Positions 20,239-63,815 of a stretch of 64,000 nucleotides of DNA are shown here, in pieces. A program made the position numbers and the translations under genes. Location: assembly GCA_040285825.1 (NCBI GenBank), contig JAUPSS010000013.1, positions 186,001-250,000 of the forward strand, in the 5' to 3' direction. How positions within the stretch are numbered: the stretch's first letter is position 1; every line of letters starts with the position of its first letter. Under the pieces are notes generated by a model. It saw only the letters and a list, made by a program, of their open reading frames with translations, had not been told where the DNA came from and did not search any database. Origin of the DNA: Eukaryota sp. TZLM1-RC. Lineage: Eukaryota; Protista; Metamonada: BaSk clade.

Positions 20239-21069
20239 ATGGACAATGATGCTTTAACCATTGGTATAGATCTTGGCACCACTTACTCATGTGCTTCCCG
20301 ATACCATAGTTTTAATCAATCAGCCACCCACACTGCTCAACTCCCTGATGAACTACAAGTGGCCCAAGACCCTAGTACAGGCAAGCATCTTACACCCTCT
20401 ATTGTATCTTGGAAGGCCAGTAAGAAGTCTCCTACTTTTTCCACCTTGGTTGGTGAATCTGCTGAAAACCAGCTTGCTCAAGACCCGGCAAACACTGTGT
20501 ATGAGATTAAACGCATCATTGGAAAGAAATATAGTGATAGTTCTGTGCAAGAAGACCTCAAACGATGGCCATTCATGATTGTCAAGGACCCATACCAGGA
20601 CTCTCCCCTTGTCCAAGTCAATCTTCCCAACCCCAACACTAACCCCACTCCCACTACCTTTTGTCCTGAGCAGATTAGTGCCGAAGTTTTAAAGAAGCTG
20701 AAACACACTGCTGAAGTAAGGTTCAATGCCAAGGTAAGCGGTGCCGTCAATACAGTGCCCTACAACTTCAACGAAACTCAGCGTCGTAATACAAGAAATG
20801 CAGCAAGTCTGGCTGGAATCCGGTCTGTGAGACTAGTTAATGAGCCAACAGCTGCTATACTTTCTTATAAATTTATTCATCCAAGCGTGAATAATAAGAA
20901 AATATTGGTATTTGACCTTGGCGGAGGGACGCTTGATTGTACAATTGCACATCTGTATCATGAGGATGACACGTCATGCCCTGTTGTTAAAGTGCTGGCA
21001 GTTGGTGGTGATGCTAGAACTGGAGGAATGGATATTGATAACGCATTGGTAGATATGGTCATTTCTTGA
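20239..21069 (+). pseudogene. Divergent Hsp70-family gene, truncated within the nucleotide-binding domain
   Basis: IGIDLGTTYS, TPSIV, PEQISA.VL, TVP.NF, NEPTAA, VFDLGGGT, GG.DID; stops at 276 aa next to a minus-strand Fanzor remnant. Confidence 0.8.
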
Positions 21070-21222: not shown

Positions 21223-22081
21223 TAGAGATGGGCATCGTCCGCACTAATCGGACTACGAATTAGTCCGTTCAAACGAACTGCTCTGAAACTAAACGGACGA
21301 ACTACGGACTAGACTAGCCAGTCAACGGACGAGAAACGAACGAACTAATCTCTAGTCCTTAGTTCATTCAAACGCACTACGGACTACCTCGTGAAACAAC
21401 TCAGTTGACAATAAACTTTATTAACCATATGGAGAAATATGATGAAAGATGAACCATGTATAAAATGTATATAATATGTTAGTAGGCTTTACAATCAACA
21501 TCAACCCTCCCTTCTTTGATAGGAAAGTGAGAGAGAAACACATTCTAAACCACATTTTTTACATAATCAACATAAGAAAAGATCTTTATTTTGTAATAAA
21601 CAAACCACACTAAAGCTGGATAACATACATAAATTAATTCGTGTTCTGCAGAAAAAATAATAAACTTTTATCAATGATTAATCAAGTTCTAGCTGCCAGC
21701 CATTACCAATCCAAGATTGGCTTGGAGACAGAGGGACCAGATCAACTTTAGCCTCATCAACATTAGGTTTTTTGGAAGGAGGAGAAGTCATTAGGTTGAA
21801 AGATGTAAAACACTACGAGAATGCAACAGTGCTGAATGTATTCATGTATATTTATATAAACAGAAGATTTATTGACGTACTGATTCTATATAAGTATAAA
21901 CGGACGAACTACGGACTAGACTAAATCCACTTGAGCCAACTACGGACTAGTCTGTAGTCTAGTCCGTAGTCCGCTTAAAAAACTACAGACTAGAAAAAAA
22001 TGAACGAACGAAATACGGACTAAACTAGTTTTTAGTCTAGTTCGCAGTTTAGTCCGAAGTTTAATTTTTTGCCCATCTCTA
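21223..22081. mobile_element. Non-autonomous hAT-superfamily DNA transposon (859 bp)
   Basis: 12-bp TIR TAGAGATGGGCA (21223-21234) / TGCCCATCTCTA (22070-22081). 8-bp TSD CTTCATAC/CTTCAAAC. Clustered subterminal ACGGACTA/TAGTCCG repeats. No transposase ORF. Confidence 0.9.
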
Positions 22082-34064: not shown

Positions 34065-36963
34065 TCACCCACTAAGATACTTGTTTAAAATTGTTATAAG
34101 TTTTTGCTTAGTAACAGGCTGGTGTTAGTCGATGAAGGGACATACTTTGGGTAGAAAGTCTTGCATAATACTCAAACAATCCTGAACAGTGGAAATGCTC
34201 AAATCTGCAGTTAACGCTATAATGTCCGTCCGAGGAAGAGACTTTGTCTGTTCCAAAAGGCGTATTTGTTGAGAGGTTTCCACTCCATTAAGTGGCTTCA
34301 TGCGGTAATCCATCAATATAAGCGAAATCTGTTGGTGATTTGTTTTGTACACAGCAATGGCTTCTGGGCCGGAGGATGCGGTCAATACTTTGACACCCAT
34401 AAGTGTCAATAACTTTGAGACAGAGCGTAGGTTCAATATGCTGTCATCTACCACCATGACTGTAAGATTCCCCACAGCTAATTGTTCTTCTACATGAGAG
34501 ACTGAAGGTTGTTGTGCCCAAGCCAGTAGCTTCCTAAGTAGCGTGTAGTAAGTTGTGGGAAGAAGCAGAAACTCGCCCGAAGAAATAGTGGTGCACGAAA
34601 GCTGCATCTCTCCCTTGTTTTGAATGATCAGAAGCAGCCTTGATACCGGTAAACATGACACAGCACTCAGAATTAAGGACATTCTAACATCAATCAATAC
34701 ATTGGTTGGACTTAAGGAGTGCAAATAGTTCCTAAATGCTACTGGATTGTCTTCAGTAAAAACATCAACATCACATGTAAAGAGACGTAGCTGCTCCACC
34801 AGGTTTTGAACAAGGAAACACGTTGTATCTCCAGCGAGAACAATCTTGATATTACAACAAGCAGACAAATAGGTTCTTCTCGTTGGGGGATGGCGTGCTC
34901 TGGTTAACTCAAAGTCAAACCAGAATCTTGAGCCTGGACATCAGAGTAACTAAAACCAAACAAACCTCGTCCTTCAGTAGATTCTACATTGATCTTAGTT
35001 TTCAACTTATCAGCCATTTTCTAGGATAAAGAAATGTAAACCTTCATACTTGGCTGAGATAGAGACCCAATCCAGCTCCTTGTACCGTCTTTTGTGGATC
35101 CTCCACCTCAAATGGTTCAAATACGTTGGCCATAAGCTGTGGACTCATTCCTATTCCTGTATCAGTTAGTTCAAACCTTATGTGTACCTTTTCTGCCAGT
35201 TGATGCAAGCATGACAAGCCTAACTTGATAGTTCCAGAGTCTGTAAACTTAACAGCATTGGCAACGAGGTTGAGGACAATCGTCTTTACTGCCCTTTCCA
35301 AACCGATAAAGTTGTCATCCAAACAAGGATGAATTACCTCGCTGAATAAAACATTCTGTGATGTACGTTCCCGATACATGTCATAAATAGCATCTACCAA
35401 AGAGACCAAATTAAACTCTGCAGGGGGAATGACGCTTGAAGTCTCCACCTCCACAGTCTCCAGCATATTAGATATGAGATTCTCCAGAATGTGGGAAGCG
35501 TCTTGAATAGCCTTCACGTTCTCCTTGACAGTTTCAGTGGTCATTGTTTCCATTATTAGTTCTGTGTTTGTTAGGATGGATGATATTGGAGTCCTCAATT
35601 CATGACTGAATAGTGCAAGCAGCTGTTGTTTCGCTCTTTTGGAGACCTTGGCTGATTCCAGAGCTGCCCTGAGTTCATGTTCTTTCAACACTCTTTCACT
35701 TATGTCTGTTATACAAAGGGCACGGGTTCGTTCAAGCTCGTCACTAAGAGGAAAGGATAACACATCCACTGTTCGCCCGTCTTTCAACAGTGCCCTGGTA
35801 ATATGGAGGATTCTCGGTGAGTCTAAGTCCAGCTCCATAAGTACCCTAATTGGCGCATCATCCATAAATGAATTACAAACAATGTTGAGAATCTTGGTCG
35901 TCTCCATCTCTTCAGTACAGAAAGCCTGATCACAGAATAGCTCCCTCATCTTTTCGTTCATGCAAAAGATGCTGTCTTTGTTGTAGAGAATGATTGCTAT
36001 ATTAGCCACGAATGAAACTTCCGATAATGCTTCCTTGAAACGCCACATCCGAAGCTCTGTACTGAAAAGATCTTCACGAACCTTTTGAGTCTCTGGATTA
36101 TCGGTAATGTTAAACAATAAAATGGTGGGATGATCTGGTGGTAGAGGTACCTTTTTGAAGGAAACGGGAATGGTTTTCCCAGACCTTAGGCGAGAAAGAC
36201 TGTGCTTGTTTACCGAATCAGCTAGCTCCCACAAAGCTATGTTCTCCCTTTCTGATCTCTCGGCAGTTTCCCTATCTAAGAAGTCATATAAGGAACACGT
36301 TGGAGAAGAAACTCCTACCGTCTCTCGCATTTGTCTGTTCATAAACTCAATTTTGCTAGGGGAGCAGTGTATTCCAATTGAGAAGGGAATCTCATCAAGT
36401 ATTTGTCGTATAAGGTCAGCTCCTTCAAAAACAACCTGCCGCACTCTAATGTATCCTATGACAGCCCCATGAGTATTCCTTTGAACACGTAAATGGAAGT
36501 GTGTGGTATGTGGATCAAACTCACCAATGCTGAAGTACAATGAAGTACTCTTTTGGCTGGCTTTTTCAATCATGCCAGCTACTTGGTGTTGGATGTTTGC
36601 ACGTTTAATCTCATCAAATTGATGTAGAAAGGTGGAATCAATCCAGGAAATGTGACATTGCTTACAAAACAGCACAGGATATACATCTTCTTCCATTAGG
36701 TGGTGAATAAAAGGATCGTTGCCAACCATTACTGTTTGGTCTTCAGTGGAGCAGATGTGATTCCATATCAGGGGTTTGTTGTGGAGAAGGCTACAAAAGG
36801 TTGTACTGTGGCCACTCTCTAAAATAGGGTTGAGTTTCCGAAGAGAATGGCCAACCAGATCACCACTAACTCTTGCCAGACTTTGTGAGTTTTCAAGTAC
36901 GCAGAATGTTTTATGAGAATAACTCAGTGAGTAGACGTGGGCATCTTTGTTGATGAGATCCAT
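34065..36963 (-). CDS. Hybrid sensor histidine kinase (PAS-like sensor, HisKA, HATPase, pseudo-receiver, receiver); introns 35021-35049, 34934-34965, 34119-34145
   Basis: SHELRTP, NLVANAVKFT, DTGIGM, FEPF, GAGLGL, spliced EGRGSRFWF, VVDD, LMDYRM, ALTA, spliced FLPKPV. Confidence 0.93.
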
Positions 36964-37826
36964 AACTGCAAGTGAGTTTTAGTGAGCTTCTTAACTTAAG
37001 TCTACAATTTACAGTACAAAAAGAGACGTTTACAGTCGCCTATATTAAATAAATTTGGTGCAATTTACTTAGTTGTTGCATTTTTGTATTTTTTAAATTA
37101 ATTTTTGTTTTTTTGTGTTTTACTATAACTTATTTTTTTAACTTATACCACATCAATTCACATTACTTAACAGCAGGTCCTTCTGAAAACATTAATGGAG
37201 AAACTTATTATCGTAAAAATACCTTTAATAGAATGTGCTCCACATGTTGATGTTCATTAATAGCTCTTGTCTTTAACTACGTTTCATTGAAAACTGTGCA
37301 AATTTTAATTAGCGACCATTCACAGAAGCTTTTATCAACTATCATAATTTGTTAGTTTTTTATTAATAAATATGCCAAAACAAATAGCAAATTGCTTATA
37401 ACCACTCAACAACAAACTGAATGTTATGGCAAATCGAAAAGAAAGTTTATTTTGAATTTAAATATATGAATAAATGAAATAGTATATGAACAGTTTTCAA
37501 TACTCAGCCAGCGAAAAGGAAATAATTACCCCTACAATACCACCATAGTTTATTGAAATATATTCCTTTATTAATGCTTATTTATTTATTATTCAAAGTT
37601 TATTACTGACTTTTCAAAATTACTATGATGACAGATTCAAACTATTCGCACAAGCCCATGGGAAAACATAAGATTCTTGGTTTATACTGATATATAATAA
37701 TAATTAACTAATATAGAATTACAGACGGGTTAAGCCCTACTTCTTTGTCAATAAAGGCTATGTATGACTTGAGAAAGAGCGTTTTGTGGGGTGAGTGAAA
37801 ACTGAGTGAGTAAAAAAAGTTTGTAC

Positions 37827-38818
37827 TCACAACCCACTCAAAAAGCGATCCTCAGTATACACACCATAATAATTTTGTACAACATTAAAGTTAACGATAG
37901 ATGAGTGTGAGGGGGATACATTATGGCTGTCTATGGGAGATGGGTTATGGCTAACATCTTCTGGGATTGTATACTTTAAACGACGAGGATCAAGAATTTG
38001 CTTGACAAGATTGACGAAATTAGTTTCATCATTGACTGAATGTTCACACCATGAAACTGCTAAAAAGTCCTTCAAGTGCTCTTCGTCACTAAAGAAAAAA
38101 GCAGATAATATAATAATTAATTTATGGGAAAGGGGAATTGGTATTGTCACCTGGGAGTCCATGTTCTTTTCAGGTCTTTTTTGGAAGGGTTAATCATTTG
38201 TTGAAAAGAATTTCCCAACACATGTAAGTGGTTAGAAGAATGAGAATGATATTGAGGAAACTTATCCCATATAGACTTCATCATTGTATCAAACATAATC
38301 TCTTGTCCAAAGTACTCTTGTGGAAAAAACCCTTGGATAATTGATACACATTGTGCTCACAATTCAGTACCCTGCAAAGGAAATTCCAAAAACCTTTGTC
38401 CCAAATGAAAATTTGAGACATTCAGCCAAATACCCTTGCCTCCAGGAACAAAACAAGGTGTCATTTTGTTCTGATCGATCAGAAGCTTATATACTTTATC
38501 AGGATGTAAATTGAAACGCTGCATATAATGTGGAATCTTCCAGGAAGAGTATTGATCAATGCAACGGATGATGTAGGATGACCATGGAGTAATTTGTTCA
38601 GAAGTAAAGACTAAAGAAGAATCTTGAAGTGGTACGGTTGAAATAACGTCGTTGTCCTGGAAGAAAGAGATTGCATAAGTAGCAGAAAATAAATTAAGGA
38701 GGACAGGGAACAGAGCAATGAAGGTGGATGAGGGTGGTAGGTGAGAATTCAAAATTAGTTTTGTCAAGTTTAGATTTTCAGATCTTCGTGGCAGGACTTT
38801 TCCCAACTGTTTTTCCAC
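37827..38818 (-). pseudogene. Interrupted ORF of unknown function
   Basis: Two adjacent coding-like ORFs (153 and 111 aa) separated by stops and a frameshift; no recognised motif. Confidence 0.25.
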
Positions 38819-42366: not shown

Positions 42367-43116
42367 ATGTTCTCTGCATCTGTTTTCCCAAAAGTTGGAA
42401 TCTCTGCAGCTGCCGTCTCTATTCTATTCTGTCTTTTCTTTGGTAACTTCTATTTTGATGATCTGCAAACAATCCCTTACATCTCCTATGTGTCTGGGAG
42501 ATACCCCTTTCTTCCTATTTTCAGTGGCGGACTCACTGTCACTGGAACTTGTATTGCCATCATGACCAACTTGTACGCTTCCATTGTTGGTTCTCGGAAT
42601 CCAAAGCTCTTCCCTTATGTGGGAGTTGTACTCGCTTTTATCTCAACAATGTCCATCATTGGTGGTTTCTCACTAGCTGCACTTTCTCTGGTCTCCGTTT
42701 ATGATTCTGTTATTCTCCACACAGTGTTTGCCCAAGTCTTGTATGTCCTTTCCTCCACTGATCAAAGTTTCTGGACCAATCTCTTAGCTAGTCTTGCTGT
42801 CACGATCGTTTCCTTCAAGGAGCACAAGATCCTCGTGTACAGAGATGATTCAACAAGGAAGAGGGCAGTGTTTTGGCTTCGTTACAGGTTTGTAGTAATC
42901 CTTAGTCTGCCAATTGTCACCATTCCCTATCTTCTACTCCCTGCTTTTGTAGATACTGAAAAGAATCCCTGGGTTGATTCTCTTTCTGCCCTATTACAGT
43001 ACATCTCTGTGACACTTGTCATTATGTTCTTTTTGTCAATGTCGTTCGACCTTTCCCTATATGAATTGAACATGAAACAAAAGGAGGATAGCGGGGTTCG
43101 ATCTCAGGTTTGTTGA
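42367..43116 (+). CDS. Frag1/DRAM/Sfk1 (TMEM150-like) multi-pass membrane protein; probable in-frame 27-nt intron 42741-42767
   Basis: IPYISY...P..PIFS.G, H.VFAQVFF after splicing, LQY; about 6 TM segments. Confidence 0.7.
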   Translation: MFSASVFPKVGISAAAVSILFCLFFGNFYFDDLQTIPYISYVSGRYPFLPIFSGGLTVTGTCIAIMTNLYASIVGSRNPKLFPYVGVVLAFISTMSIIGGFSLAALSLVSVYDSVILHTVFAQVLYVLSSTDQSFWTNLLASLAVTIVSFKEHKILVYRDDSTRKRAVFWLRYRFVVILSLPIVTIPYLLLPAFVDTEKNPWVDSLSALLQYISVTLVIMFFLSMSFDLSLYELNMKQKEDSGVRSQVC

Positions 43117-49316: not shown

Positions 49317-49388
49317 GCCGGTATGGTCTAGTCGTATGATTCTCGCTTTGGGTGCGAGAGGTCCCGGGTTCAAATCCCGGTACCGGCC
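49317..49388 (+). tRNA. tRNA-Pro (TGG)
   Basis: Cloverleaf GCCGGTA/TACCGGC, anticodon loop TTTGGGT, GGTTCAAATCC B-box, followed by TTTT. Confidence 0.95.
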
Positions 49389-52455: not shown

Positions 52456-52525
52456 CAATATAAATATTATAAATAAAATATTATAAATATAATTATAAAA
52501 TATTATAAATAAATATTTCGGAAAA

Positions 52526-52597
52526 GGCCGGTACCGGGATTTGAACCCGGGACCTCTCGCACCCAAAGCGAGAATCATACGACTAGACCATACCGGC
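52526..52597 (-). tRNA. tRNA-Pro (TGG), identical to 49317-49388
   Basis: Exact reverse-complement copy, followed by TTTT. Confidence 0.95.
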
Positions 52598-52990
52598 AGG
52601 TTGGCCAAGGTAGACGGTTACACACTTAGATTTTTTAACTTTTTTTAGAAGAGTACTCTAAATAACCTCAGTAACCTCAATAAGAGTCTTCAAATCCTAC
52701 GTATTTTGATGTGAACCGATCATGTCCAAGAGTTTGAGTTTAGACATGTGGATGTGGTTGAAGTATTGGAAATTGACATTTCAGAAAGTATTTATTTTCA
52801 GTGAAGACCATACGCTTTTAAATTTTCTTGTTTAATTTCTCAAATTCCTCAAGTTTATGGTCTTCTTTTGAATACTTAATGAATTCGAGAATTCCAGGAA
52901 TAATGGAATTCAAAAATATGGTGAAAACCATAGACAGATGAAATTTTGTGATTAACATGAATTTGCCTGCAGTACTTATTTGACTTTTCA

Positions 52991-53342
52991 ATGGGTGGCA
53001 AGGCAGCCTACATCGGTTTAGGAAAACTATGACACACTTCATTGATGCTTACTTTAGGGAGGTGCTAAAAATGCCCGTTATGGAAGGAAGAATCTTCGTG
53101 ACAACATTCTTGGCATCACAAAACCTGCAATACGAAGATTGGCTCGTCGTGGTGGTGTTAAGAGACTATCATCATTGATTTATGATGAAACTCGTGCATC
53201 CTTGAAGCAATTTTTACGATCAATACTCAGAGATGCCATAATGTATACTGAACATGGACAAAGGAAAACAATGACGGCTCTAGATGTTGTTTATGCCCTG
53301 AAACGTAATGGTAGAGTACTATATGGATATGGCGTGCTCTAG
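52991..53342 (-). other. Strand check: no feature on the minus strand opposite histone H4
   Basis: No minus-strand ORF with recognisable motifs over this interval; see the plus-strand H4 entry. Confidence 0.05.
52991..53342 (+). CDS. H4: Divergent histone H4; exon 1 52991-53026, 31-nt CT-AG intron 53027-53057, exon 2 53058-53342
   Basis: [12 protein letters not shown]|[36 protein letters not shown]...[24 protein letters not shown]. Confidence 0.92.
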
Positions 53343-53899
53343 TAAATTGTTGGGTTAGGGTTCATCATCAATGATGACGTGGCAGTGATGATGCATGAAT
53401 ATATCACCTTTTGTAGTACCTTTGTTATTTGATTCAGAAAATTGACTCTAAATTGTGTTACAAATGTCACTTCAGTTGCGACACGCACTTTGAGCTCCTA
53501 TTTTTACCCTTATAAAAATGAACATTTAATACACCAAAATTCTACTTCCTCAAACTGCACATCTGCTGCCGAAAGCTTACCTACAGTCTTTTCTTTATAA
53601 TATTTTACAACTGATAACAACCAACTAGGTTCCAAGCTGCACATACCCTCAGAAATGGAAAATACAATTTTTGCCATAAGCTTCGGTCAAAAAAAAACTT
53701 TGCAACAAGACCCACCTTGACTGTGATTTTTCAAACTGAATTTTATCATTCTGCTATAGATTTAGTCGAATGATTGTTATTTTCCAGATTTAACGAGTAA
53801 TCGTTTCTGACGAATATTGATTCCTTGAGGTACTTCACCTTCTAATAAACTAATTGTTCTTTCAGTCATTTGATTAATTATGCTGCTGTTTAAATCCAT

Positions 53900-62317: not shown

Positions 62318-63815
62318 CTATTCAAAGAAAGAGCCAGTCAAAACTCTAACCAAATTAACACCGAAAACCACACTAAAAAAACCTAAAACTAAGAATACCC
62401 AAAATTTGGATTCAAAACTAGATCCCAGAGTATTGAATCTAAAGCTACTAGGAAATTCCAATCTAGCCCGCCTTCGTGCATATAAAACAAACAGGCAAGG
62501 AAAGCCTAGCATAATCCACGAACCAGCAAAAGTACCGACTAAGCTAATAACGGTTTTCAAAGAGGTGGTCATTAAACCAATGGAGAGAGGAACCACTAGA
62601 GAAAATGCATTGCAGAACGGTCTCGACAGTTTGGAATCAGGTTTGAATGGTAAAAACTGTTCCAAATTATTACGCAGAGTCATGACAATCAGGGGATAAA
62701 GCGTAATGAAAATAAACAGTGGGAACAACAACAACATCCATGAGACAAAAGGATGATCATAACTGGCAAAATTTTGTAAGTACAATGTCTGAATTCTGCA
62801 AGGAACACCAGGGGTATTATCACAATGGTCGGGCAAATGGGGTGAGCTGAATGCAAATACAGCAGATGAGCAAAGCAAAACATACGATGTAGCCATCAAA
62901 GCAAAAGCTCTCCGTAAGACAGTGGAAGCATCCTTATGATCTTTCAATGGAGTAATAGTAGATGCTAACGAGTGGTGACCTGTGGTAAGTGGAAGAAACA
63001 AACAGACAAACACATCATAGAGTAAGTGGTGCCTCCAAACAAAAGAGGCAGCTTTTTCCATTTAAACACTGGAATATGTTCTCTGGGTGTACCTTCGCCT
63101 CTGAAAATAAACACAAAACCTAAATAAATCATAGTGTAAAAAGCACAAATTCGCAAAACTAGAGTGATACGTTGCAGTACCTTTGTTTTCTGATAGTCAG
63201 CTAACGACAGAGGGGTGATGATTAGTCCAAACACCACGATGATGAGCCGGTGGAGATTCATTCCAGTAAATGTGAACCCGAAGACAGACACAGAATCTCC
63301 AAAGATTTGCACAACTGCGACTGGTACACCTGTGGCATAGACTACTAGATCAAGAAGGAAGTAGAGTAAAAAAATTGTGGAGAACAACAATCTTAAAAAT
63401 GGGGGAAAGAGAACATCAGAAAGTTTGGAGTACTCAATGCGCCTGTTTAAGTGAAAGGGTTGTTGGTTTTTGACCATCAATTTAGTTATGATATCAACCT
63501 CATCAGCATCACTGTTGAGAGACTGGTGTTTATCGAACAAAGCATTGACAATAGAATTAGATTCTACCACAAAAGTAGAGGTGATGTAAGCGAAGATTGA
63601 CAAAATCATGATAAATAATGAGCCCAGGAGAAAACCAACCTCCTCAAAAACCTTGGGAAGACTCATGGATCCACTAATATCAAACAAAGAATGAAGTCAC
63701 GTACATTCCTACAGCATAAAGTTAGAGAATGGTGAGATTGACACACCATGTTAAAAGTGAATGCCAGAGCACTCAAAGGAGAGATCCGTTGTCCAACAGA
63801 AGTGCCACCCGCCAT
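62318..63815 (-). CDS. Amino-acid transporter family protein (TMEM104-like); introns 63716-63746, 63674-63704, 62980-63011
   Basis: Spliced FNMAVGIGSMSLPKVF..G, T.TFVVES, Q.TK.LQ.IT..LR, FG...YSMMCHHSL. About 11 TM segments. Confidence 0.85.

Follow-up and report, generated by a model that had tools for sequence, protein, structure and literature searches.

An intron start of GT is near-universal, and the locus described here raises the question of whether a segment that begins with CT, and that interrupts a histone H4 reading frame, is a genuine spliced intron. The locus belongs to Skoliomonas litria, a soda-lake flagellate deposited as Eukaryota sp. TZLM1-RC (contig JAUPSS010000013.1 of assembly GCA_040285825.1). 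We analysed a stretch of 64,000 nucleotides of this contig, which is called the window in this report, and all coordinates are positions within it. The features of the H4 gene are the following.

52991..53026, + strand: H4 exon 1, ATG and 12 codons up to the conserved GLGK (H4 residues 9-12)
53027..53057, + strand: putative H4 intron, 31 nt, phase 0, with CT-AG ends and an in-frame TGA inside
53027..53032, + strand: putative 5' splice site CTATGA, which matches the local consensus GT[AT][TC]G at +2 to +5 and has C for G at +1
53048..53052, + strand: putative branch-site motif CTTAC, with A53051 (position -7) as the predicted branch A
53055..53057, + strand: putative 3' splice site TAG, the intron end reading CTTAC-TTT-AG
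53058..53342, + strand: H4 exon 2, from GGAK through the complete H4 fold to TAG; 94 residues, lesion-free

Local translation bore out the boundaries proposed in the earlier note and its observation that removal of 53027-53057 rejoins GLGK to GGAK. If the 31 nt are retained, their second codon is a TGA and the frame is shifted; in the frame of exon 2, a TAG lies immediately upstream and the next ATG is found only deep inside the histone fold. The start context of exon 1 is pyrimidine-rich (...TCA ATG) and resembles that of other S. litria genes. Homology searches were conducted with exon 2 only, the 12 residues of exon 1 being too few to search, and exon 2 matched solved H4 chains at E 1e-38; no near-identical protein was present among the best homologues listed. 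The deposited annotation of GCA_040285825.1 carries no gene call at this locus, which is to be expected if read mappers reject CT-AG junctions and also if the gene is silent.

Several other elements surround the gene. Two stretches in the H4 promoter region, 52826-52873 and 52883-52921, located 70-165 nt to the 5' side of the ATG, match dispersed short repeats in fetched loci L007, L016 and L017 (88-93%), and are probably transposon remnants. An identical pair of tRNA-Pro(TGG) genes, at 49317-49388 (+) and 52526-52597 (-), face each other around a retroelement relic, and the second of these, in divergent orientation, precedes the H4 start by 393 nt. About 20 nt past the H4 stop, positions 53362-53377 form a hairpin with 6 bp in the stem and 4 nt in the loop, which is the geometry of the histone stem-loop in a different sequence; shuffled sequences fold equally well (z 0.44). 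Elsewhere in the window, an 859-nt hAT-like MITE (21223-22081), with terminal inverted repeats of 12 nt and a target duplication of 8 nt that is alike at 7 of 8 positions, is located immediately downstream of an Hsp70 fragment (20239-21069) whose match spans profile positions 2-235 only.

We compared a 77-codon core of the variant with P0101, the canonical intronless H4 located elsewhere in the S. litria genome, and with P0071, an H4 of Skoliomonas sp. GEM-RC1. Synonymous differences were saturated (pS 0.78 and 0.77, respectively), and nonsynonymous differences were far fewer (pN 0.23 and 0.21). The variant keeps 46 of the 47 columns that are near-invariant among 21 distinct H4 cores, the sole change being V65I, and no stop, indel or other lesion is found across its 321 coding bases. 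By these measures the H4 variant is old, and selection acted on it at least until recently. It shares with the H4 family the full histone fold, K12, K16, a K20-like lysine and GLGKGGAK, but differs from the canonical H4 of the same genome in that the core is ~74% identical, the N-terminus and basic patch are rewritten, and an intron is present.

A search for orthologues yielded none that carries this intron, whether through the neighbouring genes, GEM-RC1 or a metagenome pattern. P0071 (L001, 10001-10312) is a divergent intronless H4 that has some derived residues in common with the S. litria variant, namely R at H4 position 63 and a C-terminal VLYGYG; a tree test of orthology between the two gave p-AU 0.377, with long branches. 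Relatives of the downstream 332-residue gene were sought and none were found. The WD40 neighbour of H4 has a GEM-RC1 orthologue at 52%, and the GEM-RC1 locus of that orthologue is not syntenic and is without H4. The metagenome pattern search, for an H4 with an intron at the same position, returned two chance matches only.

To characterize local introns we drew on the window and the fetched loci for a reference set of 15 canonical S. litria introns. They were called from sequence, most by comparing the annotated span with the product length and the others by frame repair; for example, five introns totalling 170 nt account for an M1 peptidase of exactly the annotated 834 residues. The 15 introns are 23-37 nt long, and have G at +1 in every case, G at +5 in every case, and A at -7 in 14 cases. 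The H4 segment is of the modal length for this set, 31 nt, and has TATG at +2 to +5, A at -7 and the AG end; it departs from the set in lacking G at +1. With G at that position its donor would be GTATGA, which is present in two of the canonical introns. In the M1 aminopeptidase gene just mentioned, two of the introns, 29 and 36 nt long, flank a micro-exon of only 6 nt (45384-45379) within 45413-45343 (-).

A score matrix covering +2 to +6 and the last 11 bases, with +1 ignored, was trained on the 15 canonical introns. The H4 segment scored 15.5 bits, in mid-range of the leave-one-out values (7.9-19.6), in agreement with the earlier claim that it fits the local consensus everywhere except at +1. 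Among 8.16 million segments in 272 kb, scanned with positions 52471-52511 of the window masked, 8 scored as high or higher (about 1 in a million), counting those without a training acceptor; these comprise the H4 segment, two others that are probably real introns, and five matches due to chance or repeats. When all 425 cuts that restore the frame from the H4 ATG were ranked, 53027-53057 came first, and the runner-up scored 11.0 bits. Together, the matrix score and this first rank make a strong case, on sequence grounds, for the segment being by descent a spliceosomal intron, and we regard the boundaries given above as near certain.

Some other segments in the window are intron-like. High scorers at 16004-15975 (-), 17056-17030 (-) and 42741-42767 (+) have lengths that are multiples of three and contain no stop; their hosts are the 5' end of NOT1, a small unannotated gene, and a membrane protein, and they are candidate introns that ORF-based annotation would read through. 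Also, an annotated hybrid histidine kinase (1043 residues) whose ORF starts at 36963 seems to be joined over ~860 nt to an upstream ORF, 38162-37827, within 34065-38162 (-), with candidate introns of 29, 23 and 27 nt.

With regard to class, the H4 segment has the sequence features of a Giardia-type CT-AG intron: CT within an otherwise consensus donor (CTATGA, the C being the base in the assembly) and a branch site at a fixed distance from the end. Other origins were considered and rejected. A U12-type intron needs an RTATCCTT donor and a TCCTTAAC branch site, whereas the donor here is CTATGACA and the branch sequence is GCTTAC. A structured non-spliceosomal intron of the IRE1/HAC1 type is contradicted by folding that does not exceed that of shuffled sequences (z 0.04 and -0.42) and by the lack of any Rfam match over the gene. 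TTTAGG is repeated 36 nt apart (53017 and 53053), as a transposon footprint might be, but removal of 36 nt breaks the frame, and no flanking repeat pair for a transposon insertion was found. An antisense GT-AG intron would read CT-AC on this strand. If the cut is moved by one or two bases, giving AC-TA or AA-TT ends, the protein is unchanged but no consensus is matched. Finally, A-to-I editing could not rescue the donor because it cannot convert C into G.

A second departure from GT-AG ends was observed in the same window. A 31-nt GT-AT intron at 63746-63716 (-) is required for the frame of a 467-residue amino-acid transporter; it is separated by an 11-nt exon from a 31-nt GT-AG intron at 63704-63674 (-). 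With these introns removed, the transporter extends upstream to an ATG at 63815, whereas the annotation starts at 63666 and gives 438 residues; the extension adds an N-terminal FNMAVGIGSMSLP stretch. The four GT-AG alternatives to the 63746-63716 intron all run into a stop within 46 codons, and the Pfam match of the downstream exon starts at profile position 20, which is consistent with upstream exons having been missed. The reading frame thus bears out a GT-AT intron in this window, and the last intron base, which is the partner of +1, is therefore also relaxed in this genome.

In our judgement the probable explanation of the H4 locus is that it is a functional, unannotated S. litria H4 variant whose 31-nt CT-AG intron, with C at +1, is real and spliced. 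The S. litria spliceosome would then most likely tolerate C at +1, a proposal based on a single base in a single assembly, and on a gene for which a canonical paralogue exists. Five observations weigh against splicing of the intron. It is a singleton: a scan for further introns with a non-G first base, of the kind suggested in the earlier note, found none in the 272 kb of S. litria sequence covered, and the one CTATG that drew attention, at 63020, was set aside since a GT donor 9 nt downstream fits the annotated length. An isolated case is compatible with a rare but genuine variant, as in Giardia, and also with an error or a fresh mutation. Second, the locus has no annotated gene in an annotation that was guided by RNA (HISAT2, GeneMark-ET and AUGUSTUS; PMC11316075). 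Third, a canonical H4 exists and loss of the variant may be tolerated. Fourth, Trichomonas vaginalis spliced the CT intron of Giardia only once its CT had been replaced by GT (PMC1201135), and tolerance is thus not general in metamonads. Fifth, pairing at the H4 donor is weak on paper, with C at +1 and A at both +6 and -1.

Some of these same observations enter into an alternative in which the C is real but reflects a recent G-to-C change, as a fixed lesion or a heterozygous allele, that blocks or cripples splicing, so that a dispensable H4 has become a pseudogene of very recent origin or a weak allele. The presence of the canonical intronless P0101 means that the variant copy may be dispensable and keeps this reading open, and the missing gene call, the repeat remnants in the flanks (two of them within the 165 nt upstream of the ATG), and the G found at +1 in all of the canonical introns are compatible with it, as is the impairment of yeast mRNA formation by mutations of invariant nucleotides (10.1101/212811). 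Yet such a change would have to be the first hit in a gene under strong selection, the 321 coding bases being free of any other lesion, and it would have to strike one base among what we estimate to be some tens of possible inactivating changes, in a genome that tolerates another terminal change, the GT-AT intron. We regard a recent lesion as unlikely.

An error in the assembly, with G as the true base at 53027 and an ordinary GT-AG intron, seems to us quite improbable. A single substitution would suffice to produce the GTATGA donor, the base directly follows a run of four A residues, and a genome-wide search for oddities enriches for such errors. The deposited NCBI contig also has C at 53027, with 0 mismatches to the window, but this is the same assembly and not an independent observation. 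The assembly (31.9 Mb in 16 contigs, 55% repetitive) was based on nanopore R9.4 reads at 41x, and was corrected with Illumina reads at 206x (PMC11316075). The H4 site is unique among the sequences compared, with a longest match elsewhere of 12 nt, and the variant has 63% DNA identity to its canonical paralogue; correction with the Illumina reads should therefore have worked at this site, which weighs against an error. The errors left over in assemblies corrected in this way are mainly homopolymer indels and seldom transversions, and no single indel creates an in-frame GT donor here.

Canonical splicing of GT53016 to the AG whose last base is 53061, which would yield an H4 with a shortened tail devoid of GLGKG, is very improbable, for although it keeps the frame with canonical dinucleotides it scores -7.3 bits, has A at +5 where all 15 reference introns have G, is at 46 nt outside the 23-37-nt range, would place the branch A at -11, and leaves unexplained why GGT TTA GGA AAA still encodes GLGK when synonymous sites are saturated. 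The earlier note had held that no canonical solution keeps the frame, and this proved to be untrue: the frame is kept by cuts to 53061 both from GT53016 and from GT52995 (67 nt), and also by cuts from GC53003 and GC53006 to AG53057 (55 and 52 nt). All of these in-frame GT-AG and GC-AG cuts, however, score poorly (-12.5 to +0.7 bits), are longer than the reference introns, and delete GLGK.

If the CT-AG intron is spliced, as we favour, the U2-type spliceosome that handles the 23-37-nt GT-AG introns would presumably remove it as well. The donor may be recognized through +2 to +5 together with the short, fixed intron length, after which the branch A at 53051 would attack C(+1). Pairing in the yeast P complex joins G(+1) to G(-1), A(-2) to the branch A, and U6 to U(+2) (10.1101/212811). 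In the H4 intron, A(-2), U(+2) and the branch A are all present, -3 is a pyrimidine, and the one loss is the +1 partner in the G(+1):G(-1) pair. Possibly, a ruler picks the acceptor six bases beyond the branch A, and would thereby render the G(+1):G(-1) check at exon ligation unneeded; the GT-AT introns of S. litria would then be the other face of the same relaxation. The simplest account would be that introns in this organism are defined by short length, +3 to +5 and the branch-A ruler, and can now do without the terminal pair. The strongest form of this account, in which S. litria has wholly abandoned the pair and both CT-AG and GT-AT introns are constitutively spliced by one major spliceosome using those three elements, is offered tentatively and may well prove too strong. 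Were it true, S. litria would be a natural, culturable system for exon ligation without its most conserved check.

The closest known counterpart is the 35-nt CT-AG intron of the Giardia lamblia [2Fe-2S] ferredoxin gene, which the earlier note had rightly described as starting with CT (PMC1201135). In the Giardia reports this intron is described as spliced, and Giardia introns as having a (G/C)TATGT donor and a branch site fused to the AG (PMC1201135, PMC10711314, PMC3510501). On that description the two introns share CT followed by ATG at +3 to +5, very short length, a position near the start codon, a branch site joined to the AG with constant spacing, and a metamonad host whose other introns start with GT. 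They differ in that the Giardia signals are rigid, namely the donor just given and a 3' motif CT(A/G)ACACACAG with the branch A at -8, whereas the S. litria intron has A at +6, a looser branch motif, CTTAC, and A at -7; also, S. litria has far more introns, with GT-AT ends too, and splicing of its H4 intron is predicted from sequence.

Other systems are more distant. Among the metamonads Trichomonas vaginalis and Spironucleus (PMC1201135, PMC6679479), the Trichomonas introns differ in being 59-196 nt long. U12-type introns resemble the S. litria case in allowing variation at the terminal bases (AT-AN, GT-AT) and in depending strongly on the branch point, but the H4 donor is GTATG-like and not RTATCC, and CT-AG is absent from the combinations named (PMC4176328). 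The same human survey names TT-AG, AT-AG and GA-AG introns, and not CT-AG. Its U2-like examples, ETV1 (TT-AG) and ACTR10 (AT-AG), show that a major spliceosome can process an intron with a non-G first base provided that the rest of the site is good, although these introns are long and lie in an intron-rich genome, and some AT-AG introns are rescued by A-to-I editing (PMC4176328). In the literature that we searched for protist CT-AG spliceosomal introns, only the Giardia reports were found, and the S. litria genome paper mentions introns once, in its methods (PMC11316075).

If spliced, the H4 intron would be likened to that of the Giardia ferredoxin gene, as the second reported lineage with a natural CT-AG intron, and tolerance of C(+1) would not be a Giardia one-off among the metamonads. 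The CT-AG and GT-AT introns would together point to a spliceosome that operates without the pairing of first and last intron bases seen in the P-complex structure. An entire histone variant gene has been missed by annotation at this locus, and pipelines that accept GT-AG introns only may thus undercount genes in the S. litria genome.
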